Assembly: GCA_964270895.1 (NCBI GenBank)
Contig: OZ185450.1
From: Podarcis filfolensis
Lineage: Eukaryota
DNA length: 64,000 nucleotides
Reading direction: 5' to 3' (one strand)
In this document: in pieces, positions 30,352-55,836 of the stretch
Numbering within the stretch: position 1 is the first letter of the stretch
Layout of the letters: each line of letters opens with the position of its first letter
Made by a program: the position numbers and the translations under genes
Notes under the pieces: model-generated
Told to the model about the DNA's origin: nothing
Databases searched by the model: none
What the model saw: only the letters and a program-made list of their open reading frames with translations

Positions 30352-30483
30352 NNNNNNNNNNNNNNNNNNNNNNNNNNNNNNNNNNNNNNNNNNNNNNNNN
30401 NNNNNNNNNNNNNNNNNNNNNNNNNNNNNNNNNNNNNNNNNNNNNNNNNNNNNNNNNNNNNNNNNNNNNNNNNNNNNNNNNNN
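30352..30483. other. Assembly gap (132 N)
   Basis: Run of N. Confidence 0.99.
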
Positions 30484-31683: not shown

Positions 31684-31818
31684 CCGTGGGATTCATGAGC
31701 GAAGACGAGTACTTGGAGATCACTGGCATCACTCGGGAGCAGTCAGGGGAGTACGAATGCAGTGCATCCAACGATGTCGCCACTCCTGTTGTGCGGAGAG
31801 TAAAAGTCACAGTGAACT
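31684..31818 (+). CDS. NTM: Neurotrimin exon, second half of Ig domain 2 (135 nt, phase 1 to 1)
   Basis: Pyrimidine tract plus CAG acceptor, GTGAGT donor. Encodes (A)[44 protein letters not shown], nearly identical to chicken CEPU-1 and human NTM as I recall them. Confidence 0.97.
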
Positions 31819-32229
31819 GTGAGTATTGGGTAGGTTGTTGCAGGGCAGGGTGTAGGTTGCTGCAGCTTAGCAGTAGTGGGGGGGTGCTGCTGGAAAGATT
31901 TCCACAGTCTTTCTTGGTGCATTTTCTGTGTTTTCTTGGCATATTCTCTGCACCTTTTAATACCTGCAAGAGATAAATTAAATACCTGCAAGAGATAAAA
32001 TAAGAGCATATGAAGCTACCTTACATGAAGCTGGTCCAACCTGAAACCTTCTGAGTCGTACCCAATGTAGCGCTAAGTTAAAGTTATGTAGCAGTATACT
32101 TGTTTCACTGGCAAAAAAAAAAGGGTTTGTGCTAGCAGAATGTCATTGAGCATGAGAATGCATAAGCAGATTGCTGGTCACTTTATTGCATTGTGGATTG
32201 ACCATTCTGTTGCATGAGTTCTGCTAGTG

Positions 32230-32365: not shown

Positions 32366-33159
32366 TGCTAGTGCGACGGTTGTGTTGGATTCCTCTGTTG
32401 CAGAACACTAAAACTCAGCCATCCACTAAAGAATGTTGGATATAGCGCCCTGCATGAAAAGTGCATGCTTTGCCTTTGAGCTACAAACCAACATTTGTTG
32501 CACCACAGTAAATCTTCCAAAAGGGGGCTGAACAGTAACATGGTAAATTGGGAGCATCTCTTTCTAGTGACATCCCAGCAGAAATGATGCTGCCTAGGCC
32601 AGATGTCCAGTTCACCCAATGAATGGGTCACACTTGTCTGCATGCTTGCATACTGATTTACACACATACCCCGCATTTCAGAACTCAGACAAGTGCACAC
32701 ATTTCTCATTCACACACAGGTAAGTCCGTAGTCAATTAGGCATACACATGTGTTTGTTGTCACATTCCTGCATGGACTCGCATGCATTTGCACACATGAG
32801 CATTCTCAAAACACACATCTTGCACCAACAGGACTTGAAAAGTGGCAGAGAGTTGAGGATGCATTGATCAAGTGGGCAGGAGTTAGAAAGTGGAACTGTG
32901 TGGGCAGTGGTAGTGTCTAAGAGATAGTTTGGAGCTGGTTCCTTTGAGAATGCGTGTAAAATAGCCTTTGAGTATTCACTGCCAGGATCTGATCACTGAC
33001 TCTTCAAGCGCATCTGGCCAAGTAACCTTCTGTCGTTGGCAGTTTGTTTTTGGCACAAGCAAAACTCTGGAGAGGGGAAGGACCTTGAAGAAACAGCAGA
33101 GCAAACTGATTTTCCAAAGCCACAGAGAACAACCCCTCAACTTGTCCCTTTCTCTACAG

Positions 33160-33280
33160 ACCCGCCATACATCTCAGATACTAAGAACACCGGGGTGCCG
33201 GTGGGACAAAAAGGCATCCTCCAGTGTGACGCCTCTGCAGTTCCATCAGCTGAGTTCCAGTGGTACAAGGATGACAAAAG
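33160..33280 (+). CDS. NTM: Neurotrimin exon, first half of Ig domain 3 (121 nt, phase 1 to 2)
   Basis: TCTCTACAG acceptor, GTACAT donor. Encodes (Y)[39 protein letters not shown](R). Confidence 0.97.
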
Positions 33281-34054
33281 GTACATGAAGGATTAGTTGT
33301 AACTGATATTAGGATATTTCAGCAGGACCTATCCTCACCATCACTGCATCAGAATTTACTTGCTCTCTTAGAAAACGGACAGCCGCTCCACCCTAAGTAC
33401 AGTCAGCATGGTGCTGGTGGGGTAGATGAGCACATTTCTCTGCAGTCGTTCAGCGACTGAGTGTGGATAAAGAACTGGGGCTAATTCTATGGAAGGATGA
33501 ATTTCATTTTTAGTTTTCCTCTGTTTCTTATTTCCCCAAATTTATTAAATTCAGTTTGCTCCCATTTCCATAAATAGGGTAGCACATATTTTCTATTAAA
33601 AACTCTTTGCAGAACAAAACTCATTCCCATTTCTGAACTCTTTTCTCTTTCTGTATGTATTTTCAATGCAATTCCAGTTAACATATATGTGCCTGGAGGC
33701 AGGGTCACTATTATATATATTTCCTCTACTATACATCTTTTGTACTCTCTCTCTCTCTATTCTCAGAGAACTTCAGTGCAAAATTTTAAAAAGGGCACAT
33801 TTTGGAAGGTTTCGCTCATGTTTTGGTTTGTAAAGTGTTAATTAAGCAGGATCACAATGAAATGCAAAGTGAATGACCCCCCCCCATTAATGTTTCAAAG
33901 CAGGGGGATTAACTTCCAAACTTGTAAGGGAATCTGCTAGCATTTGTCCAATGTTACTTTTAGCTTTGCTGTCTTCAATTCCTGCCTTCACACTCGCTTG
34001 CCACTTTTTCTTCTTCCACCCAACTTCTTATTATCCCCGTTGTCAACATTGAGA

Positions 34055-35815: not shown

Positions 35816-35967
35816 GCTCATTGAAGGACAGAAAGGGTTGAAAGTGGAAAACAAGGCCTTCTTCTCCCGCCTGACTTTCTTCAATGTCTCTGAGCAGGAC
35901 TATGGAAACTATACCTGTGTGGCCTACAACCAGCTAGGAAACACCAACGCCAGCATCATTCTGTACG
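35816..35967 (+). CDS. NTM: Neurotrimin exon, second half of Ig domain 3 (152 nt, phase 2 to 1)
   Basis: TTACTTCAG acceptor, GTAAGT donor. Encodes (R)[50 protein letters not shown] with the Ig DxGxYxC motif and three N-glycosylation sequons (NVS, NYT, NAS). Confidence 0.97.
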
Positions 35968-36167
35968 GTAAGTAAAGCATGTCCTGGTATTCCAGTGGGA
36001 TCGTATATGGTCAAGGAGATGTGGGAGGGGTGGACAGGTGAGTTTAAAAACCCTCTCTTTTCAAGTCTGGGAAAGGTGGGCAGGGGGGCTACTGGACTCA
36101 TGTCCTACACATGGGCTTCCCTTTGGCACCAAGTTGTCCACTGTAGTAGCAGACTGCTAGACTAGGG

Positions 36168-36835
36168 CAACATACACCCCATACATTTAAAGCACCATGA
36201 AACCACTTTAAAGAGTCCTGGCTTCCCCCAAATAATTCTGGGAGCTGTAGTTCACTAAGAGCATTGAGAGTTGTCAGGAGACCCCTATCCCCCACCCCCA
36301 AAGCTGCAATGCCCAGAGTGGTTTAACAATCCGTTTCCCCTCCCAGGGATCTATGGGGATAGTAGCTCTGGAACAGGGGTCTCGTAACAACCCTCAGCAC
36401 CCTTAACAAACTACATGTCCCAGAATTATTTGGGGGAAGCCTGGACTGTTTTAAAGTGGTATTGTGGTGCTTTAAATGTATGGGACACGGGTGGTGCTGT
36501 GGGTTAAACCACAGAGTCTAGGACTTGCCAAGCAGAAGGTCGGCGGTTCGAATCCCCGCGACGAGGTGAGCTCCCGTTGCTCGGTGCCTGCTCCTGCTCA
36601 CCTAGCAGTTTGAAAGCATGTCAGAGTGCAAGTAGATAAATAGGTACCACTCTGGCAGGAAGGTAAACAACGTTTCCATGTGCTGCTCTGGTTCGCCAGA
36701 AGCGGCTTAGTCATGCTGGCCACATGACTCGGAAGCTGTCTGCGGACAAACGCTGGCTCCGAGTCGGTCACGACTGGACCTAATGGTCAGGGGTCCCTTT
36801 ACCCTTTACCTTTAAATGTATGGGGTGAATGTGGA
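36168..36835. mobile_element. Long palindromic MITE with a Sauria SINE inserted in its right end
   Basis: CCCCATACATTTAAAGCACC ... GTGCTTTAAATGTAT|SINE|(CTTT)AAATGTATGGGGTG. Confidence 0.7.
36482..36813 (+). mobile_element. Sauria SINE, full head, internal deletion near the 3' end
   Basis: GGGACACGGGTGGTGCTG head and (ACCTTT)-type tail. TSD CTTTAAATGTAT (36470-36481 and 36810-36821, overlapping the tail). Confidence 0.92.
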
Positions 36836-37009
36836 TTTTGGTCTGACCCAGCAGGGCTCTTATATTTTCTGCCACAAGGGCTGAACAAGTGCTGCATCCA
36901 TGACATTTATTAGAGTCATGAAAGACTAGCCTCCCTCCTTAGCCTCTTTTCCTTGGGATGCCACTGGATAGACAACCAAATCTTTACAAATTATATTTAC
37001 TCCTAATGT

Positions 37010-37203
37010 TTAGGAACATAGGAAGTAGCTTTTACTGAGTCAGATCACTGGTCCATCTGGTTCAGAAATGTCTACGTTGACTGGTAGCAGCTCTCCCTTG
37101 GCTTCAGACAAGGGGCATTACTAGCCCTACTCAAATTTACCAGGGATTGAACACAGGAGCTTCTGCCTGCAATGCAGTATCTCTACCACTGAGCATCTTT
37201 CCC
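37010..37203 (-). mobile_element. tRNA-derived squamate SINE
   Basis: TAGGAACATAGGAAG tail, CAGCTCTCC..TTCAG body and CTACCACTGAGC head (reverse). Confidence 0.7.
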
Positions 37204-38855
37204 TGGCATCTGCAGATGTCAACAGCTTTCAGGATGTGGGGCTTCTGTCAAATGCTACTCTCAAAGAGTAGGACAAGAAATGAGGTGGACTAAGCCACCA
37301 GGGTGACACTTAGTGAAGGCTATAACTTCCTAATCAGGCAAAAGTCAGTCCAGGATTTTGTACAACTCTGCTGGTTCCATAATAACTTTGACGGTCTTCA
37401 GTTGTAATGGGCAAGGGCTTCACTATTCTACTTTTCTTGAGTCAACTTCATCCTCCTCTTCACTGACACATGGACTTTGACACATTCATTACTATGGATG
37501 TGGAAAACCAACCTGAGAAGATAACCTTCCCTGGAAACTGCATGGACGTTTCACCCCCCAAAAGAATGCCAGTATTCACCTTGAATTCTGCTTTCTGTGG
37601 GATTCTCTGGCACCTTACACCAACAAACTTCTTCATTCCACTGCCTGAAGTCAGTATGGGGAATCATTGGCCTGCCAGGTCTTGCTGGACTCCAACTCCC
37701 ATCAGGCCCAGAAAGCATGGTCTATGACCAGGGATGATGGGAGCTGTAGTTGAGTGAAATCTACAAGATGAAATTTCTCCCACACCTGTTCTGACGTACA
37801 CCTGTTTCAGTGTCTCCCAGAAGTGTTGTCAGAACTGCCTAGTACAGAGTACTTTTCTGCCTTAAATCGGGGAAACATTTACTGTAGCACTAGACTTTCA
37901 GCTCTTTCTTCAGAACATATAAAATTCCAAGAAGCTGAATTATCCAGAGGCTCCCCTACCCCACACTTGAACAACATGAATACACACAATCCCCCTCTGA
38001 GATTTTTAGAAGCCAGATAGCCCCATGGTGGGATCATTCAAGTACCATTGTTGCCTGATAAGAAGTACTAAATAATTGCAGCTGGAACCATCCCAACCCC
38101 ATAGGACACCATAGAACTTCTAACCCCTTTACAACATCCTCATTTGGGGAAATCTTGATATACCCATTGTAGATCCATCAGATAACTGGTCCCCTCCTCA
38201 ACTCATGTTTTATAAATACATCTTAAGAAATTTCCTCCTCCAGAGTATTGCTCTTTCAGGTAATCAAGCAGAGAGGGGACCTGTTGTGGTGAGGACAAAT
38301 TTCCTCTCTATATACAAAACAGCCACCACCACCACCAAGTCAGAGAGCCTCCTCTGACATTGCCACCCCAGAGTGCAGTCTGTTAGGTGAGGCTTTTGAG
38401 AATAAACAACCCAAGCGGCTCGGTGATCCCAGGTTTGCTTCCAAGTCGCATTTTCTATTACTGCAACATGAAATAAAAAATTGACTTTCGCAAAGGGAGG
38501 CGGGGAAGAGCTCTGTACCCTTATCTGGAAGCTATTTTCTCCACATGCCAGAGCTCTGATTAGAGTGATGGATCCATCTGACACCACTCACAGCCAGGGA
38601 CAGCTGTAATTGCTTGGCTTATTTGTCACGCTTCTCCAACGTTGTGGCAGGCAGAGCTGTTCTGGCTGCCTTTCTGTGCCAGTTGGGAGCTGAGGTGAGG
38701 AGCATAACCTGGAGTGCCCCACTTTTCTGGCTTCCTATGCCCACTTTAACCGATTGTTACTGGGTGGTAGGGATAGTAACCATGCCAGTCCATGTCTATT
38801 GACCATTTTAACATAACCTCCTTGTTGTATACTACACTCTTAAGAGGGCTTAAGC

Positions 38856-39110
38856 CAGGGGTCAGCAAACCTTTTCAGCAGGGGACCGGTCCACTGTCCC
38901 TCAGACCTTGAGGGGGCCCGGACTATATTTTGAAAATAAAAATAAAAATGAACAAATTCTTATGCCCCACAAATAATCCAGAGGTGCATTTTAAATAAAA
39001 GCCACATTCTACTCATGTGAAAACACACTGATTCCCAGATTGTCCGTGGACCAAATTTAGAAGGCGACTGAGCTGGATCTGGCCCCTGGGCCTTAGTTTG
39101 CCTATCCATG
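38856..39110 (+). mobile_element. Charlie-like hAT MITE, copy 2 (intact)
   Basis: TIRs CAGGGGTCAGCAAAC / GTTTGCCTATCCATG. Perfect 8-bp TSD GCTTAAGC (38848-38855 and 39111-39118). Confidence 0.9.
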
Positions 39111-39284
39111 GCTTAAGCGCTGTCCCATGGGGCATGGAGTGACCCAGCCCAAGACAGGTAGGTGAAAAGCAACATGAAGAGGAAGCCACACAGAGGGTAC
39201 GTCAATGAAACCAACATTAATATGGTCTGTGGAGGAGGAAGCCACTGCTTTTGATGCAGAACAGGAGCTAAGATCACATCCTCG

Positions 39285-39605
39285 CTACCCATTTAAAGCA
39301 CCATGACACAGCTTTAAGCAGACATGGCTTCCCCCAAAGAATCCTAGGAACTGTCATTTGTTAAGGGTGATGAGAGTTGTTAGGAGACACACACACCCCT
39401 CCCCTAACAGAGCTGCAATGCTTAGGGTGATTTAACTATCAATTGCTCTTCCCATGCAACTCTGGAAATTGTAGCTGTAATGGGAATAGGAGTCTCCTAA
39501 CTGCTCTTTGTCCCCTTCACAAGCTACAGTTCCCTTGATAATAGGAGGAAGTAGCAACTGCTTAAACTGGTTGAGTACTGCTTTAAATGTGTGGTGCAGA
39601 TGTGG
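39285..39605. mobile_element. Long palindromic MITE
   Basis: CCCATTTAAAGCACCATG ... GTACTGCTTTAAATGTGTGG; same family as 36168. Confidence 0.6.
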
Positions 39606-40340
39606 CCCCAAAAGCCCAGTCCCTGAGAGATGACTCAGGCAGTCCCTTGTATGGCAAGCCAGGAGGGCCAATACAGAGCAGTAGGTTTCCTGAAGATTTA
39701 CCCATAAATACATTGCCATTACTTCCATAGTAACCAGAAGGGGAATTATGGAAGGAAGAATGCTAATCTGTGGGTCAGCAAGAAACTGAAAACGAAACCT
39801 GCTCATCTTCTAAGCACAGCATGAGTCCAGGTTCTTATTTCAAAGAATCCCAGGCCTCTGGACACAACAGACATGCATACTTCATCCACTAGAATTGGGG
39901 CTCTTGCATTCTCCTACCATTGGTAAAAGAGAGGCTGGCATCTCCTGGCCTGGTGATCATCATGATGCAACCTTTGCCCCTGTGTGTTGTGTGCCATATT
40001 ACTTTAGTCTATTAAATAGGAGCCTAGGACTGCTTGAGTCCCAGAGGAAGTCAAAGTGGCCACTGGATTGGAATTAGAAGCTAAATATCTCAATTTATTC
40101 CTTTGTCTGAATCTCTAGGTGTCCACACTGGAATCCCTCCAAATGTCAGGCAGGGGTAACATCAGTGTTTCAGACCACATATAATTATTATTCATAGCCA
40201 AACAAGAGGATGTACTGTAGATCATGTAGCCATCTCCTGAAAAACCTGTGTTATTTTGCTTTGTTTCAAATGAAAAACAGCTGTGGGAGGCTGTGAGTTT
40301 CAGTGGAAAGATGGTAGTGGGGAGGGAGTTGCTTGACCCT

Positions 40341-40412
<72 letters not shown>

Positions 40413-40428
40413 GTCTCTCTCTCTCTCT
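40341..40428. repeat. (CT)n microsatellite
   Basis: Direct read. Confidence 0.92.
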
Positions 40429-41449
40429 GCACAGCATTGCTGCTACCCACATCTTTCTCTCTGTGTGGAAAAGCAACTGGGGAAAGGTCACTTTTAGTGA
40501 GAAAATGCCTCAAGTGGGATTTTTATTTGCTTAGCTAATTTATACACCGCTTTGTATTTCAGCAGAAATATGGTTAAGGAGCCCTTCCCTTTCATTTCTC
40601 TTCAGACACTGGAGAACTGTAGATTTGCATGTTTGGAAAATTAATCTAGCTAAGAGCGAGCCTTCAAATGCTGCTGAGAATCTTTCCCAAGTGAATTAGC
40701 ATTTTCTTGCCCTGTTGAAATCTGAAGTGGCAGTCTGATGTTGCAGAATTGTAGAAACCTGAATCCCTGCCTACATGGGCTTCAGCTTGCCTATCTCTGT
40801 GTATGTCACAAGTGGGATGGGTCATGTCACAGGTGGGAAGAGAAATTAGGGTCCCAGTCTTTTAGTTACTTGTGATTTAAATGATTGATTGAGTTAGATT
40901 TCCACCAGCCCATCCCAAAGGCTTGGGATAGGCAAGAGGGCTTGAAAAACAAGCACAACCCACCCCCCATTTGAATAATAATAAATAAAATGGCATGTTA
41001 GAAACTCCAGCAAATGGGATAGCACATGTACTACCCCATACACTAGCCAGCAGCTACACTCTAGAACTGTTGCCTATTGATATTAAGCAGGTGTCTGAGA
41101 ATACTGTTTTCAGCGTTTGCTTTTAAAAAAATGTTTAGGAAAGCAAAGTCAGACATGTCATTTTAACATGTCATTTTAGTTTATTATGTCATTTTAAAAA
41201 ACCTGCTGCTTTTACTTAAATTTAGAGGAATTGAAGGTCAACACTTATTTTCAGCATTGATTTCATCAGTTTTATTAATGACTAATTTATGTTGTTTTGT
41301 GGAAACTTCTTGAATGTTTTTTGATGATTACGTGGCATATAAGCCTTGTTAAATAGATTAAATAAATAAATAACTCTTTTTAAAAACAATGCCCAGGGTC
41401 TGGATTTGGAGAGTCATTCGTAGGAGGCAGCGGCCTGGAAGTCACTGAG

Positions 41450-41775
41450 TAGGGATGGAGGAGCAATTCAATGCAGGTTTCCACTCAAGTCAAATCTATC
41501 CGGGAGACACTTTCCAAAATAATATGCAAAAAGAAACACGGCAATCCTGCAAAATATGAGCCTACCCGAATTTTGCTTTGCAGTTCGCCAGGCAAACAAT
41601 GTTTTGGGGGAAAATGCATATTTCAGGGTAGCATGTGCTAAAATGTGTGCATTAGTCAAAACTGCATAAGGATATGTGTTTATTAGGAGAAAAACACAAT
41701 GGGACTTGCTGCAAAATGTGGACTGGCAAAACGAGAAACCAAGGGAACAAAATTTGACAGATCCTTCCATCCCTG
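41450..41775 (+). mobile_element. AT-rich hAT-like element (TAGGGATGG family), intact ends
   Basis: TIRs TAGGGATGGA / TCCATCCCTG. 8-bp TSD TCACTGAG / TCACTCAG. Confidence 0.8.
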
Positions 41776-42224
41776 TCACTCAGAATAAATGTCATTGCTG
41801 CTGTCATACAATGAAGAAACTAGAAACACAAGGGGGATTCATGTGGTGGGAGGTAAGCATTTTGAGGGGGTGTAAAAGAAGAAGCAGTCTCTTCAAGAGG
41901 CTGATCCCATGCAGCCTTCCAAGCAAGAGTTTGTGTCCACACCAGGGCCTAAAATGTTTTATACTGCTGATTGATTAATTCCTGATGACATCTCTCCCAT
42001 CACATGCATCACAATGTTCTGTCATACAGCCTTGCAAAAAAAAAAAAAAAAGTCTGCTACCAAATGTACACTCAATGTCAAATGAAGCTAGTTTGTGCCT
42101 TTCATAGTTATATGTCACAGCCAAGTAGGTAGAAAAGAGTTTTTCTCCCTTTCTCATAACCCTAGAACTTGTGGACAGCCAATGAAGCTGAATGTTGGAT
42201 GATTCAGGGTGGATGAAACTCTGG

Positions 42225-42515
42225 AACCCACTCCTGCAGGAGGCAGTGATGGCCGCCAACGTGTATAGCTTTGAATGAGGATGAGACAAATTCATGGAGG
42301 ACAAGGCTATCAATGGCAGCTAGTTGTGCTCTGCCTCCATGGTCTAAGGCAATATTCTGAATATCAGTTGCTGGAAACCACGGGGATGGGGTGGATTGAT
42401 TGTTCTTGTACTTGGGTCCTGTTGGAAGGTTTCCTGCAAACATCTGGTTGGCCACTATGAGCACAGGATGCTGGACTAGATTGGGCTATTGGCCTGATCC
42501 AACAGGCTCTTCTTA
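42225..42515 (+). mobile_element. CR1-clade LINE 3' end
   Basis: GGAACCCACTCCTGCAGGAGGCAGTGATGGCC..ACAAATTCATGGAGG..GGATGCTGGACTAGATTGG..CCTGATCCAACAGGCTCTTCTTATG. Confidence 0.75.
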
Positions 42516-43184
42516 TGTCAGGGCACGGTTGCAAATTGTGAATACTCTTGAGCCCATTCCATGTAGCCCAAGTTTCCCAAGGTGAAACTGGTAGGTGGAA
42601 ATACCACAAGGAGTGACTACTATGGTGCAGTTGGTATTATTATTATTAAGTAGTTTTGCTCTTAGTTGGACCTAAAGTGGTATTAGGAGTTGAATTCTAG
42701 AGACTACCAGAGGTCAGTGGTGAATTTGCATGGGTAGTACCTATTTTATGCAGGGAGTTCTACGTGTCTCAGATCCTACATTGTTCCAGATGATATGAGG
42801 CCTCCCCAGAAGCCACACCAAAAGCATAAGTATCTGAGCCCAGGGATCTTGTGAGATTGCTTTCGCCGGCACTGCATGGATTACAGTTCCCCAATGCCAC
42901 AGACAATACAACAGTGTCCAAGGCTTTTAGTCCTCTTCGGTATATGTTCCTCAGATATGTACCGTGTAGGTAGAAGCAGGCCCAGAAGCCTTTGTAGGCT
43001 TTGGTGCACATCACTGCTGTCACAGGCTTGCACTAGACCTTGGGACAGTTCTAGAGGAGCCTAGTACAATGGGGGTTATGAAAGGTTCTGATAAGTGAGC
43101 TCCAGGTCTTCACTGAAATCCTTGTCAAAATTGTGGTGGGTGTTTTATTCCACTGAATTTTGTTGTATGGCTTAGAACAGGAGG

Positions 43185-43345
43185 AGCTATTCACCAGTGG
43201 AACAGGCTACCTTGGAAGGTGGGACTCTCCTTTATTGAAGGTTTTTACAGAGGTTGGATGGCCATCTGTCATGGATTAATTAGATGTGGTACCTGCATTG
43301 CAAGGGATTGGACTAGATGACCCTTGAAGGTCTCTTTAAACCTTA
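43185..43345 (+). mobile_element. CR1 LINE 3' end (ATTCTATG-tail type)
   Basis: GAGGTTGGATGGCCATCTGTCA..CCTGCATTGCAAGGGATTGGACTAGATGACCC..TATGATTCTATGA. Confidence 0.75.
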
Positions 43346-45526
43346 CGTGTCTATGATTCTATGATTTAAAGCATGTTTAAAATGCACAACATCCTCAAGG
43401 GAATCCTGGAATCTGTAGTTTGTTAAGGAGGATGGGAATTTCAGCTATCTTGGCATCAGCTACAGTTCTCAGGATTATTTGGGGGAAGCCATGTGCTTGA
43501 AATATGATTGAAATGTATGGTGTGTGCACAGCCTTGGTCAGGCTGGACTCCCTAGTTGGCAAAAACTAACTCTCAGACAATCATGCCAAAAGCAGCAATC
43601 GTTCTTCCCTTTGTTGAACATTTCTTCCCTGAACAAATCCAAGATGTAGAGTGGTTATTCTTTCTTAGGTGAGGCAGGTGTTTTAATTTCCCCACCACTA
43701 AGATGCAATAAAGGAACAACCACCGTCTCGCGAACCGCGGAGAGCCTTAAAGGAGCTCAATGCAGGGGCAGAGAATCAGTCTGCTGTTCACAGAGGGATC
43801 GTCAGATAATTAAACTACAGCAGGGTCCCACTGTACCATCCTGTACTAATCTTAGTTTAGCAAATCACTTTCTTCCCCTCCGCACCACCCTCCCACAACA
43901 CCTTTTGTGTGACTACATTGTAAACTCTGCAGGACTTCACTTTGGTTCCGCATAGTGCCTTAATCTAGTGGGAAGCTAATTTCATAAGAGGTCTCCTGTT
44001 GAGAGCCAGAATTCTAGGCCCAACTGTTGTTAGGGGCAACCACAGACTCCATGTTTTGAATATGGGGGTATGCTGCGCTAAAATCAATAGGGAAGAGGCA
44101 TGACAAGGTCCCTGAGGTGTCATGCCATCACAGGTGACCTGCAGTTTTGACCAAAAAGTGCAGAATCCTGATTCCCTCATTAATCTTAATTGATAGAGCA
44201 GTTGTGCTCCTAAATGATGAAGAGGGAGGGCAATGCATTCCTCCATAAACAACCTGATGTGCCACATTTGAAGGAGAAAAGAATAAGCTCAGCAGAGCTA
44301 ATGTGGTTGTGAGAGGAGGTGTGTAGGCTGGCAGCTAAGAGAGAAGGCTGTGTGCGGAGCAGGCCCTAATTCAAGTTTTGCCTAATTCCCCAATCTCAAC
44401 ACCCACATAAAATGCTGGGCTACTTTCGAGGGCCATTGTAAAGATGATTGAGATAAGTTATGCAAAGTGCTTTGAATACTTGAGATGTGCTATTTAAGCA
44501 CACAAATGATTATTACCATCCACTTCCATGGATGGAGATGTGAAGGAACTATTTTCTCACACCAATCCTTCAGGAAAAGAATCTAATGAGTGAACCTTCA
44601 AGAAGAGGTAGGGTGGTTTGAGGAGAATATCTCTCATCCATTTGACTTCTTTGGCCATTGAAAAGTCTCCTCTGAGATTTTACAGGGTTTGCCTATTGTG
44701 TTTGTTATATTAAAGGGGGCCCCCAGGGAGAGAGCTGAAAGCTGTGAGGTGTGAACTAGGAAACTGGGAAGCCCAATTATTCCTTGGTGTTTAATTTTAT
44801 TTAAGGCTTTTCATATCTGCCTTTTGGTTCTATAGTAGAACTTCCCCTCCACAAAAGGCAGTCAGTGACCACCCAAAACTGTAAAGCAGTGAGAAGAGGC
44901 TGTGATTTGCAGGAGAGAATTTGTGGACATGGTATCAACTAACCATCACTTCTTCCCTGAAACTCTCCTACCCTTGCCCTAGCACTTCCCCCTGTGACAC
45001 AGGAAACATGGAGTTGGCTGACAAATACAGCTAAGGTGATGTGGGAAAGGGAAAGCAACAACTGGGGTTAAACATTCCCTTCCCTGACCATTGAAGATAA
45101 ATTGTTAGCTGTCTTATGGGCTGGACATACTCCTCTTCTATAGCAGTTTTCAAAACAGGCAATAATATGGGATGATAATATCAAGAAATCAAGGTATTGC
45201 ACAAAGTGATGTGTAGGCCTAGGAACAGGCTGTGATCCCCGGCCTCTCCGGTGACCAAATAGGCTCTTTTGCAAGGCTGGCATTAAAAAGTATGTCATCC
45301 TTTCCATCTCCTTTTCTTCATGCTTCCTTTCATTCACTTTCAGAAAGTGTCTGCTGTTCTCTGTTTTGCCCATTTACTTCACAGCCCTCCCACTGCCACC
45401 CACACCTTCTCCATCCCATTTCTTATTTACACGGCGCTGTGGTCATGGAGTGGTAATTATGAAACAATATATTTATTTTTATTTTATCTTCATTTTTCTC
45501 TTCCATTGTTTCCTCACCTGGTTTAG

Positions 45527-45562
45527 AAATAAGTGAGCCCACAAGCTCAACCTTGTTCCAAG
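45527..45562 (+). CDS. NTM: Neurotrimin alternative microexon 1 (36 nt, phase 1 to 1): EISEPTSSTLFQ
   Basis: Long pyrimidine tract plus TTTAG acceptor, GTCAGT donor, in frame. The peptide matches the alternative human NTM insert as I recall it (ELNEPTSSTLLQ). Absent from the ORF track in this frame. Confidence 0.88.
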
Positions 45563-45875
45563 GTCAGTATTGTTCTTGCTGTATGTCACCTTCCGCTCCC
45601 TTATTTGCAACCTCCCCACCCGCCGCCACCCTTCGTTATACATTGCCTGTTTCCCTTGTCCGATTTGCATGGAGGACGGTACCACTTCCTGATGAGCACC
45701 CAAGAGACTGCAGGCTCTGATTGGTCTCCTTGTCTCCATCATGTCATGTTTGATCTGTTGACTCAGTGATTCAGAGCTTCAGTAACCAGTTCCATATCTC
45801 CTTCTCCTCCCTCACAGATTAGACTCAAGTAACTAAAAGTGTATCTGCATGCAAAATTCATATTGCCTTTATACT

Positions 45876-46110
45876 AGGGATGGGGAACCTGTGGCTCACC
45901 AGTTTTTGCTGAACTACGACTCTCATCAATCCTGACAAGCGTCATGGATGGTGGGAGTTCTAGCCCAACAATGTATGGAGAGTTAGGGGTGATGGAAGTT
46001 CCATCCCATTCAACATCTGGAGAGCCAATGATGGTTTGAGTTGTAGCCCACTCAACATACGGAGGGCTACAGCATCCCCATCCCTGTCCCCATCCCCTAA
46101 CCACTTTGAC
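45876..46110. mobile_element. Nested or degenerate hairpin MITEs (TAGGGATGGGG...CCCCATCCCTA)
   Basis: TAGGGATGGGGAACC at the left, CCCCATCCCTA at the right, and several internal GAGTTGTAG/CTACAAC palindromic units. Confidence 0.5.
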
Positions 46111-46852
46111 CATCAAGTTTTCCTACCCAAAGAATCGTGAGAATAATAATCTGTAGAAATGACTCACAAAACTGCAGATCACAAGCTTTCCTAAAATCAG
46201 TTTAAACCTAGAATGCACATAACCTCTTCAATATTCCCATCATAAGTCTCTGAGTTTAGGGCTTATACTAGAGCGGTGCCAAACATCCTTAAAAACAAGA
46301 ATTTTATGAGAAATGTTCTGGACGTATTTATTTTTTTAAGAGCCTCCTAAAATGGTTGGAGAATTTTGGAACACCCTTGATAATATGACCTTAATTTTGC
46401 TAGTGGAGAATCAGGTAGAGAATAAAATTCCCAGCCTTCCAACAAACAGAGCATTGCACATCCCTCACAGAAAATCTATGGCAGGGTACCCTTCCAGATG
46501 TTGTTGGACTCCAGCTCTTATCATCATTGTGCATGCTGGCATGGGCTGACGGAAGCTGTAGTTCAACAACATCTGGGACTCAGTGTGTCACAGTAGGTCA
46601 TGGTTTGCCAACTTGTTTTGTCCTCCAGATGTCGCTAAGTTACTACTGCCATCATCCCTGAGTATTAGCCATGCTGACTGGAGCTAATGGGAATTGTAGT
46701 AGGTGGGTCTAGTTATATGGGTGGTGCCAGGGATCTGCAACATATGATTCTGAGTGCCCTCACCAAACTACATTTCCCAGGATTCTATGAGGATCCATAA
46801 AATGAAAATTAATATGAAACCAATATAGGTTTGCAGAGTAGATGTGTGTCTG

Positions 46853-47115
46853 CAGCGGGCGCTGGAGCACCCCCACCCCAGAGCCAAGTGGGGCCAAATC
46901 TCCCTGACTCCCGCAGAGAGGAGCACCGGGTCGTGCTGTGCTGGGGTCACCACTTGCCAGCTTCCCTCTGTCTGCAGCCACTCACCGTGGGTCTGGGCTG
47001 CTCTGTTGCCTGGGCCAGGGTTGGGATCCCTGCAGAACAGGGTGCCTGATTGCACCCCTCAGAATTTTGCACCAGGGGTCACAACCCCCCTGCCCCTCCC
47101 CATGCTAGACCACTG
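46853..47115. mobile_element. GC-rich hAT-type MITE
   Basis: CAGCGG / CCACTG ends. 8-bp TSD TGTGTCTG / TGTGTATG (1 mismatch). Confidence 0.6.
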
Positions 47116-49519
47116 TGTGTATGGAATTAGAATGGGCCCAGTCTCTCCTTCTTCACTGTTCCATAGTTATGGTGGAGGTTTGCAGAAGCATCCATTGCAG
47201 GTGATGGGACCAGAGAACTTTTTTGGGTCCTTCCCAACTCTATGATTCTTTGTTGGGATCTGTTCCCCCATCTCCCCTTAAAAGTGTATGGGTAAGCCAG
47301 CCTTGATCAGGGCTCAAAGCCGTCCTATATTATGCAGGATCACAAGAGAGCTGCTTCCCCGCCATGGAATTCATCTCTATATAATTATGTAGTGTTTAAA
47401 GCATGTCCTTTTTGCCACTGCCTGCCAACTGGGCTGACAAAATGATCAGCCGCTGCCTTATTGATACTCTTGCAGCGAAAACAAAACAAGGCAGTACATT
47501 TGGAATCACTGCATAACATGTAACCAGGAAACGGCAGTGTTAATTAATTGATGGCATGGTGGCGGGGGGGGGGGGATGAATTTCAGCAGAAGGAGATGTG
47601 GAACTGGCAGAAAGTGGCCCCAAGTTGCACCATCTGGCAGATGAAGAGGAATGATTGTGAGGTGAAAGCATGCCCCAAATCCAGGTGTTTAAATAGGTCT
47701 GATGGAAAAAAACAAGCTAACAGAATGCAGGCGAGGGAAGAATCCTAGCAAACTTGGCCAGCTCCCCAACCTACCTCCCCATCTTCATTTGGAGAGATAT
47801 GATCCCAGGAATGGAGCTAACTTTGGTCCCTGGTCCACGGACCTCCATTAGATTTCATCACTGATACTAGGACTTGAATGTGGTTTGTCTCTATCGATCT
47901 GCATTTCCTCCCACCTTGCGGAATCAACACTGGTTTGTAGCTGCCACATTCCGAGAAGCAAAACTTATTTATTAACTCATCTGTTCTTTCTTTCTTCCCC
48001 CCCTATTTCCCCCTTTTTTTCTCTTTCTTTCTTTTCTTCTTCCTGCATGGCTTCCTTGTGTGTGTCTTCTCCTCATGCCTCCCTACATTCTGCCATGTAA
48101 GTACCACAAGCTTATATACCAGCTCTAGCCAATTTTGCATTTTTCCTATGAAAGGGGTGGGGCAACAGGGCACAGGGTGGTCTTTGCAAGGGGTGTGTGT
48201 ACATTTTTGTTTTTGTTTTTTTGTTTATGAATGGCTTTTAAGAAGATAGCTGGGAGTTAATTTTCTGGAGCATTATGGGAATCACTTGGAGGATCCAAAG
48301 CAGAAATGGTTGGAAGCTGTAGGCATGAGAGGTTTTGTAACTAATTGGAAAATGACCCAGCTTTATTAATGCGATATAAATGATCTAGGGTTGGGTTACC
48401 TGAAAGACCACCTTGGCCTTTATACATGAGCTGGATCATTTGGATCATGTGGAGTATGTATGTTCATGGGCACTTGGATGACAACATCTCATCTTTTCAA
48501 GCAGAAAAAGTTGGTATTGGCAACAAGCCAAAGGATTAATTTCCTTGTTTAAGTGAACAGTATTTTAACCTCGCCTCCCGCCTCCCCCCCCCCATTTTAA
48601 CTTTTACATTCTTCTCTTTTGTGTGGTTCATGTGACAATAAACAGGACAACTCCTCCTATGTTTTCTTAGGCACCCCCAGACCAGGTGTTTCTGCACCAC
48701 CTATTTAGCTCTGCTTGTGTGTGTGTTGCAGACAGACTGAACAGTAGTGTACAATTCATAATACAGACTGCACTGTCAACCCATAGCATGGGTACCATGA
48801 GTCATTACTCCTTACAACTGATCTAAATTCTTCTATAACCTGGATTTGGAATGAGAACATCCTTAACCGGGAGTGCGCAGAGAATGTGTCTGTACGTGTG
48901 TTCTATTCTACATATTGGTTTAGGTTTCTCTCTTCAGCCAAAAACCACAAGATAAACCTACTTTCCTTTTTAAAGAAAAAGAAAGAAACCTCATGCTGCA
49001 AAACTTATATAGCACCTACCCAGATTCTACCCATGAGGCAAACTTTTAAGCTCTCTGGCTTTGCAAGTTCCTAGAGCATCTTATTGTTGTCTGTGGCATG
49101 AGTTGCTTCTTAAGTTGCCAGATTGAGGAGGCCAGTGGATATTAGAGCTGAGCATACAGAGCTGGGTCTTCTGTCATCTCAATGTGTCAGGAAATATTTT
49201 GTCCCATGGAAGCAAGCTGAAAGTATGATGCAGCAGATGCCAGCATTTCCTCCATTGCTCATGGTCCCTGCAAAGCATCTTGTTGCTTCCTACACCCCAC
49301 CATGATTGCTTACTTCTCCTAAGTGACATCAGCACAAAGCAATACAAAAGTGGAAGTGTGATCAGTTTTCTTTACAGCAAACCAGCTTCTCAGATTCATC
49401 TCTTCAGCACCCATCTATTTGTTCAGATCTCATACTTTGTACTTTCCCATCCTTTAGAGTATGACTGTTGGTGTCACTGGCTACTAATATGCAAGGTTTG
49501 GTTCCTCTGTGTTCCTCTC

Positions 49520-49880
49520 CCACACCAAGCATTTTTTAAAAAGCCCTTTCAAAACATCAACATTTCAGTTCACATTTTGCCTAACACACACCTTTTCCAT
49601 TCAATTTTGCCTAATATACATATTTTTGCAAGCAATTACCCCAATATAACACATTTTGTTTGTTAACGTTCGTGAATCAGCGCATTCTCAACTAAACTTT
49701 CTTGCAATATATGCATTCTTTTACACATTTTGTTGTTGTTGTTGGAGAACTGCATTGCTAAAAAATAAAAATAGAGAAGTGCAGATTTTGAGGGATAGCT
49801 GCATTTTGGTTTGCATCCTGTTTTAGGAAGTATGAATTAGGTAGATGCAAATTCAAATGTGAAATGAACAAAATCTTAGG
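49520..49880 (-). mobile_element. AT-rich hAT-like element (TAGGGATGG family), reverse copy
   Basis: Reverse-complement similarity to 776-1156 (e.g. TTTGCAAGCAATTACCCCAATATA). Ends approximate. Confidence 0.5.
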
Positions 49881-50644
49881 GATGCCACTCCTTAGACTTT
49901 TCTTCACCTAAAGATGTCCCACAAGGCAGTGGGTACGAATTTTTTTTCTCAGGGTTTGTTCCCAATGCCTTTCTCATGAATGAGTATAGCCACAAGGCAG
50001 TAGAGGTTTAGGATCAGTTTACCTTCTCCTAGATGGGCCACCTTCCCAGGTTGATGAGCCCCATCTGCCTCTAACCATTTAGAGTATGAGATTAGTAATA
50101 TTCATCTGTTTTACAGGGTTGTTGTAAGGGTTACAGCAAAGGGATCTGTGGGAATCCTCAAAATCATTATAGAAGTGTTATCATCATCAAGCCTGCATCA
50201 TAACACAAGGCCCCACTCCAGATACAGAAATCTCGGTCTAATAAACATCATACCTGCAGGCTTCCTCTTCTTCTCTTTCATGCATTGTGATTTTGTTCTT
50301 CTGGGGTTTCCTTTTATCTCACCCACTTTTTTTGGTTAAAAAATATATTTGATGCAAATATCAAAATATACAGATGTTAAAGCGAACACTCCATGTGAAA
50401 GGCATGTTACTGTAAAATAATTTATACTATAGGCACTGCATTTTAACATACAGCTGTTCGAAGTGTTCAAGAGCAAATGATACACGGGTTAATCAGATGT
50501 GGGGATGTAAATAGGCATTACTTTCCATTCTGCCCTGTATTTGTCACATTTGCATCCAACCCAAGGTTTGTGCATAGCAAACACAGATTTGCATAGCATC
50601 CCAGGTACACAAGTCAAGGAACTGTGTTTGACCTCTGCTCCCAG

Positions 50645-50710
50645 CTATCTATCTATCTATCTATCTATCTATCATCTATCTATCATCTATCTATCATCTA
50701 TCTATCTATA
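50645..50710. repeat. (TATC)n microsatellite
   Basis: Direct read. Confidence 0.92.
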
Positions 50711-51123
50711 TTTCTCCATAGGCAGCAGTAGCATATTGATAACTTTATTTCATGAGGAAAAGTGTAGCTATTTTACTAATCCTTTACAAACGATTTGCAG
50801 TTGCACCAAGATCAAAGATGACAATGAGTTTTAAAAGGTCAGAAATCTTCTAGAGACGGTGATTATGAGCCTTGGTTATGAGCAACATGATGAAAATTGC
50901 AATGCCTGGAGCATCTTATTTGCCGTCTTTTAACACTCTGTAAACTGTCTGTGACTGGAAAAGCATAAAAACAGCTTAGAGATAAAAAAGAGAGAGCCTT
51001 AGCAGAAGTTTGCAAGAAATCACAGCAGTGCAAACCAGAAGGTTGAAGGTGTCTCAGAGCAGGGTGGAACACCTCGAGGGCCTTTTGTTTGCTTTATTGA
51101 TAACTTCTTCTTTAATTTTGTAG

Positions 51124-51156
51124 AAGAGACAACCACACTTCAGACACCCTGGAAAG
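51124..51156 (+). CDS. NTM: Neurotrimin alternative microexon 2 (33 nt, phase 1 to 1): EETTTLQTPWK
   Basis: TTTAATTTTGTAG acceptor, GTCAGT donor, in frame. Matches the recalled NTM/CEPU-1 insert EVKTTALTPWK / ETTTALTPWK. Confidence 0.9.
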
Positions 51157-53989
51157 GTCAGTAAAACAATAACAGCAATCCACAAACCTGCTGCTGCTCC
51201 CCCAACTTCTGGCCTTGAACCTCAGCCATCCCTCTCCGTCTTTCTCTGTTTCTTCTCCCTTCCCCTATGGCTAAGCTAACATCAATGGATCGAACGGCCC
51301 ATCATTGGCCATGTTGAATCTTTTGTCAGCTTTTGTGTCCAACCCTCTGCCTCTTTTTGCTGAATACCTGAAGGCTTTCTGCCACCTGCTTTCAAACAAT
51401 CTGCTTTGTAGCAAGACTTCACCTGTCACCAGTCATCCTTATTGCAGAATAATGCGGCTAGTCCTCATTTCTTTCAGCTTAATTTACAGATCTTCTTTAC
51501 ACAGCTTTTGCTTCCATTGCTGTGTGACCCGCTATCCTTGCTTTGCCACTTCTCCTAATCCTTTTTTCTCCCAAACCCCCAAAACACATTCTATATATTA
51601 CTCATTTGTGATCTGAGAAGCATTACAATGGTTTTCCAGTCTACCTTTATTCAGAATCTCAGGCCTGGTTTATACATACATTTTCGTCATGCATTGACAG
51701 TGATATCAAAACATGGTTTGCTGCATGTGTGAGTGGGCCTGAACAGCTACAGCACCTAAATGCCCTTATCTCCTCACATCACTTTATGCAATGCTGTCTA
51801 GAAGTGAAGAGTCATTTTATACAGTCAGGTACTGGCCTTAAAATGTACAGTAATGAGTTTGAAGAGCAGTCAAATAATGTTATTTCCACATGTGCTAAAT
51901 CCTGATCAAAATGTCCACTGCAGATTCATTGTCTTAGTTGTAGTTCACAAAGCCAAAGGTATGGAGGTATTTCAGCTGTTCTCTGAAGTAGGGTGTGCAC
52001 TTTTGAGAGGTAGAAGAACTTAATGGGATATCTTTATGTTTCTGACCAAATGGCATCTATATCTCCCCCTGCTCAGAGTGTTCCTCAGAATGGAACTTTT
52101 TTTCAACAAGCATTTACACCAGGTATAGACAATGTGGTGTGCTCCAGATATTGCTGGACTACAACTCCATCATTCCTGACAATTAGCCATGTTGGCCATG
52201 TAGTCCAAAACACCCTGAACATTGTCTACTTTTGATTTATACACCAGCTTAGACCTGGCTACTATAATCCAGCCTTGAAATTTTGCCTGCGGACGTTCTC
52301 CCTTGAAATTTGGAAGTCCCTGGGGAAAGGGATCCTCATCAGTGTGGAGAAGCCACCAATAACATCCCTCTGCGTGCCTTAACACTCCAAAGTTGGCACC
52401 TGGATGGAAAACTCAGCAGGGTATTCCAGGCCAATCATTCTCAGATGATTTGTTTCTTTGTTCTCAGATGCTCTCGGTGGATAATTGATGCTTAATAGCT
52501 TTTTCCCTAGGATACCACTGGGCCTGTTTGTTGGCCACTTTGGAACATCACATGCCTCCTTAATGAGCGCTAAGGAATTAATGTTGGAGAGAAGCCATTG
52601 CCAAGGCCAGGCTGGGCCACTTCGGCTCCTTTGTTGACTCTGCCGTCATTGATGGCTGTTTTGGCAGCAAGAGCTCCATTATCTCCTTCCATGCAGCTCT
52701 GTGCTTGGCTCCCTTGAATGCTTGTTATGAAATTTCAAAGGATCCAACTTCGCTTTCAAGAAACTGGTAGCTGAGGCTTTCTAGGGCTTCTGGTCCAGCT
52801 CCAGTGTGATAACGCCAGTTGATTTAATGGAGATAGAAAACATTTGTGGTGGAGGTGTTTAATCATCAGTACAGATTTAATAGTAAGTTACAAAGTTGGG
52901 ATTTATGCTAGGAAAACTATGCTATACCAAGAAACAAGGCAGGTGCAAAAAAGCAACAAAGTGTCTTGGGGCATCTTGGGGCATAAGCATTTGTGGACTG
53001 TGGTCTCCTTCATCAGATGCATGAAGTGTTATCCTGATCTGAAAGTACATATATACATGGTTGGGAGGATGTTGTTACAAAAAAGATAAAGGGAACTCAA
53101 ATGCAGGAAAAAAACAGAAAGTGATAATTTAGTGTTTAACAGTGGCAGCTCATAAAACCATTTTTGAAGACACAGGCATCCTGGCATGGGTAAGCCAATT
53201 ATTGCATACAATGTGCTCGAAATCCTTTGCCTTGCTTCAATCCAAAAGTCTTGATATAGTCAGCAGGTTTCATGGCACAGTCTCCCTTTGAAATCTGCTG
53301 CTCTGCGGTGGCTACTTAAAGGTCATTTGCCGAAAAGCAGAGCAATGAAGAAATGGAAACAGGAGGCAGTCATGTAAAAACCACACCGTGTGTGGCGGAC
53401 ATCTGACCAGTACCAAAGGCACATTGGGGCACATTTAAAGAAGGTGGTCTTCACAAGAGATTGAAAGGTTAACACGGAAGGGACCAGATATACCAAGTGC
53501 TGTCACCAGAGACACATCAGACAGTGATGGGATTTAGAACAGGGCCTCCCTGGAGATGCTCAGCAGACGAACAGGATTATGTTGGAGCAGACGGTTCTTT
53601 GAATGAATACGAATGAATTCAATCATATGAATCACATGTTTGGAAGCACACATCAAGAGGCTCCGGACCTCTGAGTGTTCAGTTTCACCTTACATAGCAT
53701 GTTGTGACAGGATTTAAAATGTCTCAATGTACATAAAAGAGATTGAAGTAATCTTTGCAAGACTGACAAGGGAAGAAGCATTTGACTCAACAGAACTGAG
53801 CAACGTGTTGGCAGATGTGCTTACAAGAGAGTAACAGTGGGATGATTGGGCAGACTTTCTTTTCATCCTGGGTCTCTCCACCCATAGTATTATCTTTGTG
53901 TGGTTTGGCCATTAGTTTTCCAGTGGATGATGCTCCAAGGATTCACTATGCCATGAAAATTTGATCTTATTCCTTGGCGGGTTGTACCT

Positions 53990-54180
53990 CAGTGATGCTT
54001 CAGCACATGCTATGCATGCAAAAGGTCCCATGTTTGATATATGGCTTCTCCAGATAGGGCTGGGTGACCTCCCACCTGAAATCTTGGACATCTGCTGCCA
54101 GTCAATGTGTCAATGATACTGAGCCAAATGAATCGATTGCCTGGCTTAGTATAAGCTAGCTTCCTTCATATGTTCCTTAA
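53990..54180 (+). mobile_element. tRNA-derived squamate SINE (degenerate)
   Basis: ATGCATGCAAAAGGTCCCA..CTCCAGATAGGGCTGGG..CCTGAAA..CTGCTGCCAGTCAATGTG..CAGTAT/TATGTTCC. Confidence 0.6.
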
Positions 54181-55149
54181 GGGTTTCTAACTGCTTATTT
54201 GTAAGCTGGAACACTCTGATTTTTCACAATGAAAAGTAAAGGACTCATAGTATACAGAATACGTTACTTGTGCTATGGCAGGTCTAATAATATGGGGACT
54301 TCAGAGCAAGCAGGAATGAACCTCAGCCTGCATTATTCGCATTAGTGTTGAAACTCTAAATAACTTAGAACTCAAATATATGAAAGGCCATCCCCATCTC
54401 TTCTGCTTTTGTCGTGTGTTAAGATCTGCTAAGGGGAAATCTCTTGGCAGCTCCACCACAAAGAATAGCAGGCCGGTAGAGAGATTCCATGGAGCAGCCT
54501 CTAAATTGTGGAACTCCCCAACAAGGTGTGTCAGTCACCTTCACTGTGCAGCTTTCACCATGGGCTCGTCAACATTTCCATTTGCCCTTCCACTTTCCCC
54601 CAGGAAAACCCACAGTTTCATGCTGAGTCAGAATGAAAGACAATTGGGTTTTCTATGGATTGCTGTTTGTTCTGATTCAGCGCTAAATAACAGGTTTTCT
54701 GGGAGAAAGCAGCAGGGCAAAGGCAAAACCTCTCAGCCCCGTGCCTAGAAAAGACAGGGCAGGCAGAAAACCATAGACCCCTCTGTTCTATGCACAGGAA
54801 AAGCAGTGATGTGGCTGAGCTCTGGAGATCCCCCTATTTCCTTTGGCTTTTGACAGTTAAGGAGCTGAATTTGTGGTGTTCGGTTCACTCTGGAATGGTT
54901 TTGGGTACGGTATTTTCATTGTGTGTGTGTGTGTGTATTCTTTAAATAATTGCATATCCACTTGTTGTAACCCTCTCTGGGACCTTATGGTGAAAGGTGG
55001 GTAAGAAATCTTATAATTAATAAGCTTTGGTTCAGGTGTTATGACATGGGTGTTGTGAAGACTGGCTGGTCAGCTATGGCTACTGATGAAGAAAGGGGAC
55101 AATCTCTGGAAAATGCCATTGCTTTGGGTCGCTGTTTGCTGCTCTTGAT

Positions 55150-55530
55150 GATGATGATGATGATGATATCACCATCTTGCCTTTTCTCCAGACTGGAACT
55201 CAAGGCAGCTTACACAGATTAAAATGAAATAGGTAAAACACAGAAAGCTAAAAACATTTAAAAGATAATTGTTCGAAAGTAATACAACTCTAAGTAAATT
55301 AAAGCAACATAAAAAAACACAAATCTATTAAAATACAGAAAATAAAAACAGCACAGCACTATTAAAGTCCTTTCCTTAAAAAAAAAAAGACAATTAGTTC
55401 CCAGAAACCTGTCAGAATAAAACAGTCTTCACCTGTGAATGAAAAGACAACAAGGAGGGAGCCAGCTTCTCTAGGAAGGGAGTTCCAAAGTCTGTGGACA
55501 GCCACTGAGATGGCACTCTCCCACATCCCC
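55150..55530 (-). mobile_element. L2 LINE 3' fragment
   Basis: (GAT)n tail, GAACTCAAGGCAGCTTACA and GGAAGGGAGTTCCAAAGTCTGTGGACAGCCACTGAGATGGCACT (reverse L2 motif). Confidence 0.6.
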
Positions 55531-55735
55531 ACCAGGCTTTTGTCCTTGCTTTCTTGTTGTGCTCCTACATAATAAATAAATAAATTTGACTAGGGTAGAC
55601 AGGGGTTAGTTTGGAACCAGCCGTGGCAATAACCATCGTTTCGCCATAGCTGATAATAGCCTCTGGCCTGTTTGCTTCTTCATTCCATTGCTTATTATTC
55701 CATTCACTGACATGGTACCTTCTGTCTTTCCACAG

Positions 55736-55836
55736 GCCCTGGAGCAGTGCATGATGGGAACAGTGGCGGATCAAGAAGAGTTGGCTGCATCTGGCTGTTC
55801 CCCTTCCTTCTGTTGCAACTGCTGCCCAAGTTTTGA
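55736..55836 (+). CDS. NTM: Neurotrimin terminal coding exon: GPI-anchor signal
   Basis: TCTTTCCACAG acceptor. Encodes (G)[32 protein letters not shown] then TGA: a small-residue omega region, a spacer and a hydrophobic tail. [11 protein letters not shown] matches chicken CEPU-1 as recalled. Confidence 0.95.

Follow-up and report, generated by a model that had tools for sequence, protein, structure and literature searches.

Does the last intron of the neurotrimin gene (NTM; CEPU-1 in birds) allow splicing to vary the segment that links the third Ig domain (Ig3) to the lipid anchor, and does it also decide between a membrane-bound and a secreted protein? This question was raised by a 64,000-nucleotide (nt) stretch of DNA from Podarcis filfolensis (GCA_964270895.1, contig OZ185450.1), the whole of which is hereafter referred to as the window. 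Neurotrimin belongs to the IgLON adhesion proteins, which influence both the growth of neurites and the number of synapses and are shed by metalloproteases (PMC10606101). Such cleavage, and the distance from the membrane, would be determined in the segment between Ig3 and the anchor. The initial annotation of the window had proposed a splicing code in this intron, composed of two optional microexons and two routes for removal of the glycosylphosphatidylinositol (GPI) signal. As described below, the combinatorial stalk-length module of this proposal was upheld, and its membrane-versus-secreted switch found no support. Taken jointly, the observations are best explained, and with high confidence, by an NTM 3' end carrying two ancient, optional phase-1 cassettes that would provide graded stalk lengths.

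Microexons of the last NTM intron

The assignment of the window to the 3' end of NTM is based on the sequences of its exons. When the 50-residue translation of the exon encoding the second half of Ig3 (Ig3b) was compared with solved protein chains by phmmer, neurotrimin (6dlf, 6u7n) was retrieved with an E-value of ~6e-22, ahead of the paralogues OPCML (6e-20), NEGR1 (2.5e-12), and IgLON5 (6e-9). Upstream open reading frames (ORFs) near 31680-31825 and 33157-33289 corresponded to the Ig2b and Ig3a exons, respectively, and the peptides of Ig2b, Ig3a, and Ig3b, like those of the two microexons described below, were identical to Podarcis NTM models. As summarized in Table 1, the splice sites and translations of the Ig3b exon and of the last exon, which encodes the GPI signal, agreed with the initial annotation. 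The final base of the Ig3b exon is the first base of a codon, which the start of the GPI exon completes as Gly, and the Ig3b exon was 87-92% identical to its counterparts in snakes and turtle. The last exon encodes a short polar stretch and a Leu/Phe-rich tail ending in KF-stop, the tail being preceded by SRRVGC, and thus reads as a C-terminal GPI signal with small residues, a short spacer, and a hydrophobic tail. Its coding part was identical to those of Chelonia and Crotalus at 85-86 of 101 nt, and its peptide differed by one residue from that of P. raffonei. By these peptides, the animal belongs with the lacertids, next to Podarcis. The statement that every junction between Ig3 and the GPI exon is in phase 1 also proved correct, both for the two flanking junctions and for the two microexons. 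Phase 1 at every junction is the usual pattern of Ig-superfamily genes and nothing special to the last NTM intron.

Table 1. Positions and boundary sequences of the NTM features in the window (slashes mark exon boundaries).
Feature	Position	Strand	Boundaries and remarks
Ig3b exon (second half of Ig3)	35816..35967	+	Pyrimidine tract and AG before, GTAAGT after; phase 1 in and out
Ig3b donor, GTAAGTAA	35968..35976	+	Read-through gives Gly-Lys-stop (GGT AAG TAA)
Candidate alternative terminal exon, ctgcag/AT GTC ... GAG TAG	37216..37271	+	Tail of a Podarcis lilfordi NTM model, tblastn E 6e-9
36-nt cassette microexon, EISEPTSSTLFQ	45527..45562	+	AG/../GTCAGT; phase 1 in and out
Conserved intronic flank 3' of the 36-nt exon	45563..45805	+	Snake and turtle alignments; TGCATG at 45666-45671
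Proposed 11-nt stop microexon (G+AT TAG), judged unsupported	45818..45828	+	Acceptor 99.8th, donor 93rd percentile (crude matrix)
33-nt cassette microexon, EETTTLQTPWK	51124..51156	+	tag/aag/AGAC...AAAG/gtcagt; phase 1 in and out
GPI-signal exon, coding part	55736..55836	+	Phase 1 entry; TGA stop 55834-55836; internal acceptor 55748

Of the microexons proposed for this intron, those of 36 and 33 nt are real, as supported by their splice-site ranks, their conservation peaks, and the annotation of their peptides. The intron contains 4162 AG..GT pairs spaced 6-63 nt apart, and all of these were scored with a crude splice-site matrix, the ranks of which are indicative only. An open frame alone is at chance level in this intron, since 884 of the pairs were in frame and open, and a mechanical scan likewise gave many open AG-N36-GT and AG-N33-GT stretches. 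By the matrix, the 33-nt exon ranked 1st of the 4162 pairs, and the 36-nt exon ranked 9th, or 3rd if the 884 in-frame open pairs are considered by themselves. Both exons are preceded by a long pyrimidine tract and followed by the donor AAG/GTCAGT.

In the DNA comparison, the loci of Thamnophis, Crotalus, and Chelonia spanned the intron, and that of Phrynosoma extended only to ~44.1 kb of the window. The Chelonia and Crotalus matches were colinear with the window and comprised Ig2b, Ig3a, Ig3b, both microexons, the last exon with its 3' untranslated region, and a few non-coding blocks. Both microexons were located on conservation peaks against the snakes and the turtle, an outcome that the initial annotation had set as a check on its proposal. 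In particular, the 36-nt exon was identical at all 36 positions in the lizard, Thamnophis, Crotalus, and Chelonia, synonymous sites included, as were its acceptor and donor, and the conservation extended ~130 nt upstream and ~240 nt downstream of the exon. The 33-nt exon was identical at 25 of 33 positions in Thamnophis, 27 of 33 in Crotalus, and 28 of 33 in Chelonia (the last counted by eye), with conserved splice sites. On the Thamnophis sirtalis scaffold LFLD01S000574.1 (37432-38730), the order of the two microexon blocks is inverted, with the 33-nt block preceding the 36-nt block, and no GPI exon is present among the many N gaps; this order is probably due to misassembly of the scaffold, because Crotalus adamanteus is colinear with the window.

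The peptide EISEPTSSTLFQ was identical across squamates and turtles, and the pattern E-[ILV]-x-E-P-T-S-S-T-L-[LF]-Q was held from teleosts to primates, with teleost NTM having EIIEPTSSTLLQ followed by further Ser/Thr-rich inserts. The peptide of the 33-nt exon, unlike that of the 36-nt exon, drifts, and was identical in the Podarcis and Lacerta isoforms. The microexon set is under strong purifying selection.

Isoforms and stalk length

Both microexons are multiples of three and in phase 1 at either end, and therefore each could be included or skipped without a change of frame. As an isoform readout, we inspected the sequence following the conserved end of Ig3 in predicted models (XP_), to which all isoforms named here belong, and searched the exons one by one. 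The protein set was obtained by a library search with Ig3b and a subsequent word search with a Pituophis NTM model containing both inserts, in which the C-terminal part was scored, and amounted to 437 NTM/OPCML proteins. All four combinations, adding 0, 11, 12, or 23 residues, were annotated in squamates and again in turtles, so that the independent addition proposed initially was borne out by predicted isoforms of other species, congeners included. The form with both exons (+23) was found in Pogona X4, Anolis carolinensis X9, Podarcis raffonei X1, and Lacerta agilis X9/X10, as well as in several turtles, Tamandua, and frogs. The 36-nt exon alone (+12) was found in Crotalus X1, Sphaerodactylus X3, Anolis X8, Caretta X2, platypus X2, and Cercocebus X3, the 33-nt exon alone (+11) in Podarcis muralis X3, many birds, Macaca X14, Monodelphis, rodents, a caecilian, and frogs, and neither exon (+0) in Podarcis muralis X6, Anolis sagrei X6, alligator X6, and chicken. 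Together, the RefSeq models of Podarcis and Lacerta covered +0, +11, and +23, and also +12 with a shortened GPI exon.

Among the predicted NTM isoforms, both peptides were seen in those of reptiles, birds, mammals, and amphibians, and the 36-nt peptide also in those of teleosts; frogs, salamanders, and one caecilian had one or both inserts, and in the bird models retrieved the 33-nt insert was seen alone. By this distribution, the stalk module is old and is already present in public annotation, including that of the close relatives Podarcis and Lacerta. The suggestion that the lizard version might be unannotated was therefore contradicted, in that the RefSeq models of P. muralis, P. raffonei, and Lacerta agilis contain the exons with identical peptides.

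Two further annotated variants lie outside the initial annotation. One uses a NAGNAG acceptor at 51127 and the other an acceptor inside the GPI exon, at 55748. The former belongs to a tandem acceptor (51122-51127) of the 33-nt exon, at which the choice of site adds or removes one Glu; the 30-nt form, starting at 51127, was annotated in P. muralis X4 and Pogona X2. The latter, CAG/TGCATG (55746-55748), lies 12 nt into the GPI exon, and its use removes GPGA. The stretch through this acceptor was identical in Chelonia and Crotalus, and the resulting isoforms, whose last-exon part starts with VHDG, were annotated in Lacerta agilis (X6/X8), P. muralis (X5/X7), Pogona (X8/X14), and Anolis.

According to the proposed mechanism, the stretch of the mature protein from Ig3 to the GPI attachment site would gain 0, 11, 12, or 23 Ser/Thr/Pro-rich residues, the tandem acceptor would shift the stalk by one residue, and the internal acceptor of the last exon would remove four. 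The attachment residue is presumably located ~9 residues into the last exon, as judged by alignment with mammalian NTM and by the human entry. On this assumption, stalk length would range from ~9 residues (or 5 if the internal acceptor is used) to ~32. The inserts may form a flexible stalk, by which both the distance that the Ig domains can reach and their accessibility to sheddases would be determined. This stalk is possibly O-glycosylated, since Ser, Thr, and Pro account for 6 of the 12 residues of the 36-nt exon and 5 of the 11 residues of the 33-nt exon. No literature pairing neurotrimin with microexons, or dealing with the O-glycosylation, function, or shedding of its stalk, was found in the searched library.

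As for regulation, downstream Rbfox sites are known to enhance exon inclusion. In the window, a TGCATG follows the 36-nt exon at +104, and the Thamnophis, Crotalus, and Chelonia sequences have it at +97 to +101, so that this exon has the conserved (U)GCAUG within ~300 nt downstream that marks Rbfox-enhanced cassettes. Given this conserved hexamer and the rule for downstream sites, neuronal Rbfox proteins would promote inclusion of the 36-nt exon. As to neural microexons of the SRRM4/nSR100 type, both exons fall within the length of this type (~51 nt or less), and of its UGC motif close upstream of the 3' splice site, one TGC was seen ahead of the 33-nt exon, at -34, and none in the 60 nt ahead of the 36-nt exon.

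That the 36-nt exon is completely invariant points to some specific role for it beyond that of a spacer. We tentatively consider, at well below even chances, that it encodes a specific recognised motif beyond a spacer, such as a glycosylation-dependent ligand or a protease/sheddase site, under neuronal control of the Rbfox type. If this were true, inclusion of the exon would toggle a defined interaction rather than just tune the length of the stalk.

Several points weigh against the interpretation outlined so far. Exon use in the animal of the window, and the proportions of the forms, are deduced from orthology and from predicted models. The Rbfox link is drawn from a single conserved hexamer, and TGCATG occurs 11 times in the intron as compared with ~5 expected. 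Furthermore, no TGC, the UGC motif of the SRRM4 type, was present in the 60 nt upstream of the 36-nt exon. In a separate word search for spliced transcript fragments in squamate RNA assemblies, a 106-residue C-terminal piece of the Pituophis model yielded mostly genomic ORFs covering Ig3b alone. Raw sequence alone sufficed to spot a genuine, deeply conserved alternative-splicing module.

Secreted forms and other rival explanations

The rival explanation that survives best assumes a secreted isoform lacking the GPI signal, produced either by the candidate terminal exon at 37216-37271 or by intron retention or intronic polyadenylation after Ig3b or the 36-nt exon; we consider it possible, yet rather improbable. 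A precedent exists in the secreted chicken isoform CEPU-Se, which is on record by its title (Lodge et al., 2001, Mol Cell Neurosci 17:746; cited in PMC10084454 and PMC10606101). The tail of a P. lilfordi model maps to the candidate exon, which would end the protein without a GPI signal; this exon adjoins a tRNA-like short interspersed element (SINE), and no conservation of it was seen in the snake and turtle loci compared. Varied non-GPI tails also occur in the models of Pantherophis (X4), Varanus (X5), and Chloebia, but none is conserved between lineages, and some of these models are products of ab initio or ORF-calling pipelines. The alternative tails of the Sphaerodactylus, Chloebia, Pantherophis, and Phrynosoma models and of one mammal gave no significant match in the window.

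Among the retention routes, read-through of the Ig3b donor into Gly-Lys-stop had been put forward initially. The sequence is indeed present, and GGT AAG TAR after Ig3b is common to the lizard, Thamnophis, and Chelonia, while the ORFs of other squamates continue past the donor as GKCG or GKRG and those of birds as GE-stop. It is, however, just the donor consensus GTAAGT followed by a purine (GTAAGTAR), and the route thus amounts to an early stop in an unspliced transcript; neither AATAAA nor ATTAAA was found in 35968-37500, that is, within 1.5 kb of the donor. Models of Thamnophis and mammals read through the donor of the 36-nt exon. In the flank downstream of this exon, the lizard and snake sequences differ by indels of 1, 5, 6, and 1 nt, of which the 1- and 5-nt indels break the read-through frame; the flank is therefore non-coding, and these models are best regarded as intron read-through. 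A 52-residue read-through ORF following the 36-nt exon was accordingly rejected as a coding tail.

It is distinctly unlikely that the combinations are mostly annotation noise and that one form dominates in vivo, as in a simple tissue switch by which, for instance, neurons would include both exons and other tissues neither. That all the isoform evidence consists of predicted models speaks for this possibility, as does the frequent co-regulation of neural microexons. Forms with a single exon nevertheless recur independently in numerous clades and runs of annotation. The +12 form is seen in snakes, anole, turtle, platypus, and monkeys, and the +11 form in birds, lacertids, a marsupial, rodents, and frogs.

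The other secretion route of the initial annotation, an 11-nt stop microexon (45818-45828) that would follow Ig3b or the 36-nt exon, end the protein in Asp-stop, and thereby give secreted neurotrimin, is scarcely credible even as a lacertid-specific exon: it has a strong acceptor (pyrimidine tract 0.9, 99.8th percentile), ranked 2nd of the 4162 pairs, is followed by a second TGCATG 18 nt past its donor, and borders on the conserved sequence flanking the 36-nt exon, but its donor CAA/GTAACT is weak (93rd percentile by the crude matrix), its acceptor AG is absent in Chelonia, its TAG is absent in Thamnophis, Crotalus, and Chelonia, where alignable sequence stops just upstream, none of the ~400 proteins retrieved has the predicted ends ...ILYD or ...LFQD, and its stop, far 5' of the last junction, would make the transcript a likely target of nonsense-mediated decay unless the exon were the last. 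Neither conservation of the splice sites and stop in the snakes and turtle nor use in a retrieved model was thus observed for it. For any GPI-less product, incomplete splicing or terminal exons specific to a lineage would be a more likely source than this 11-nt exon, and a secretion switch in the last NTM intron is unsupported. SINE-like repeats at 45870-46100 and 46480-46700, just 3' of the 11-nt candidate, would draw stray RNA reads.

Apart from the microexons, the block 38340-38733 in the same intron showed 88% identity over 395 nt to Phrynosoma, 76-82% to the snakes, and 74% to the green turtle, and its core resembles homeodomain/Pbx-Meis sites (TGATTAGAGTGATGGATCCATCTGACAC ... TAATTGCT). 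An enhancer within the intron is the probable reading of this block. Readings as an intronic poly(A) site or a hidden exon were rejected, given that the AATAAA motifs are not kept in the turtle and the pattern of conservation is non-coding. The blocks 41949-42039, 47840-48122, and 52462-52737 were conserved with snakes and/or turtle at 69-88% identity, and no inserts matching them were seen in the retrieved isoforms. The window also contains an N run at 30352-30483.

Comparison with known systems

The stalk of the Ig-superfamily protein NCAM1, which can be GPI-anchored, offers an analogy to the two NTM cassettes. Mini-exons of the muscle-specific domain give NCAM1 an O-glycosylated hinge in its membrane-proximal stalk, and a separate stop exon, SEC, gives its secreted form. 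The likeness would be one of mechanism only, as the gene and exons are unrelated to those of NTM.

Closer to the present case, chicken CEPU-Se is, by its title, a form of an NTM orthologue in which alternative RNA processing removes the GPI anchor, and as such provides a precedent for membrane-bound and secreted forms. Neither of the secretion routes proposed for the lizard is conserved, and the ORFs of birds run into GE-stop after Ig3b.

A homologous cassette is suggested by OPCML, the paralogue located next to NTM, which has a 27-nt juxtamembrane cassette at the same place and in the same phase as the 36-nt exon of NTM. Its peptide starts with EIS, reading EISEPPALA in Pogona and EISPSSAVA in mammals, but has fewer residues, and conservation does not extend to the second half. 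The retrieved OPCML models showed nothing that corresponds to the 33-nt exon. Because the EIS-type cassette shares place and phase with it, the 36-nt exon probably predates the duplication that gave rise to NTM and OPCML.

Finally, the RefSeq isoforms of NTM/CEPU-1 from Podarcis muralis (X1-X8), Lacerta agilis (X6-X10), Pogona vitticeps (X2-X14), and Anolis carolinensis (X3-X9) represent the same gene and the same position. They share with the window the peptides of the microexons, the tandem acceptor, and the internal acceptor of the GPI exon, and nothing of substance differs between them.

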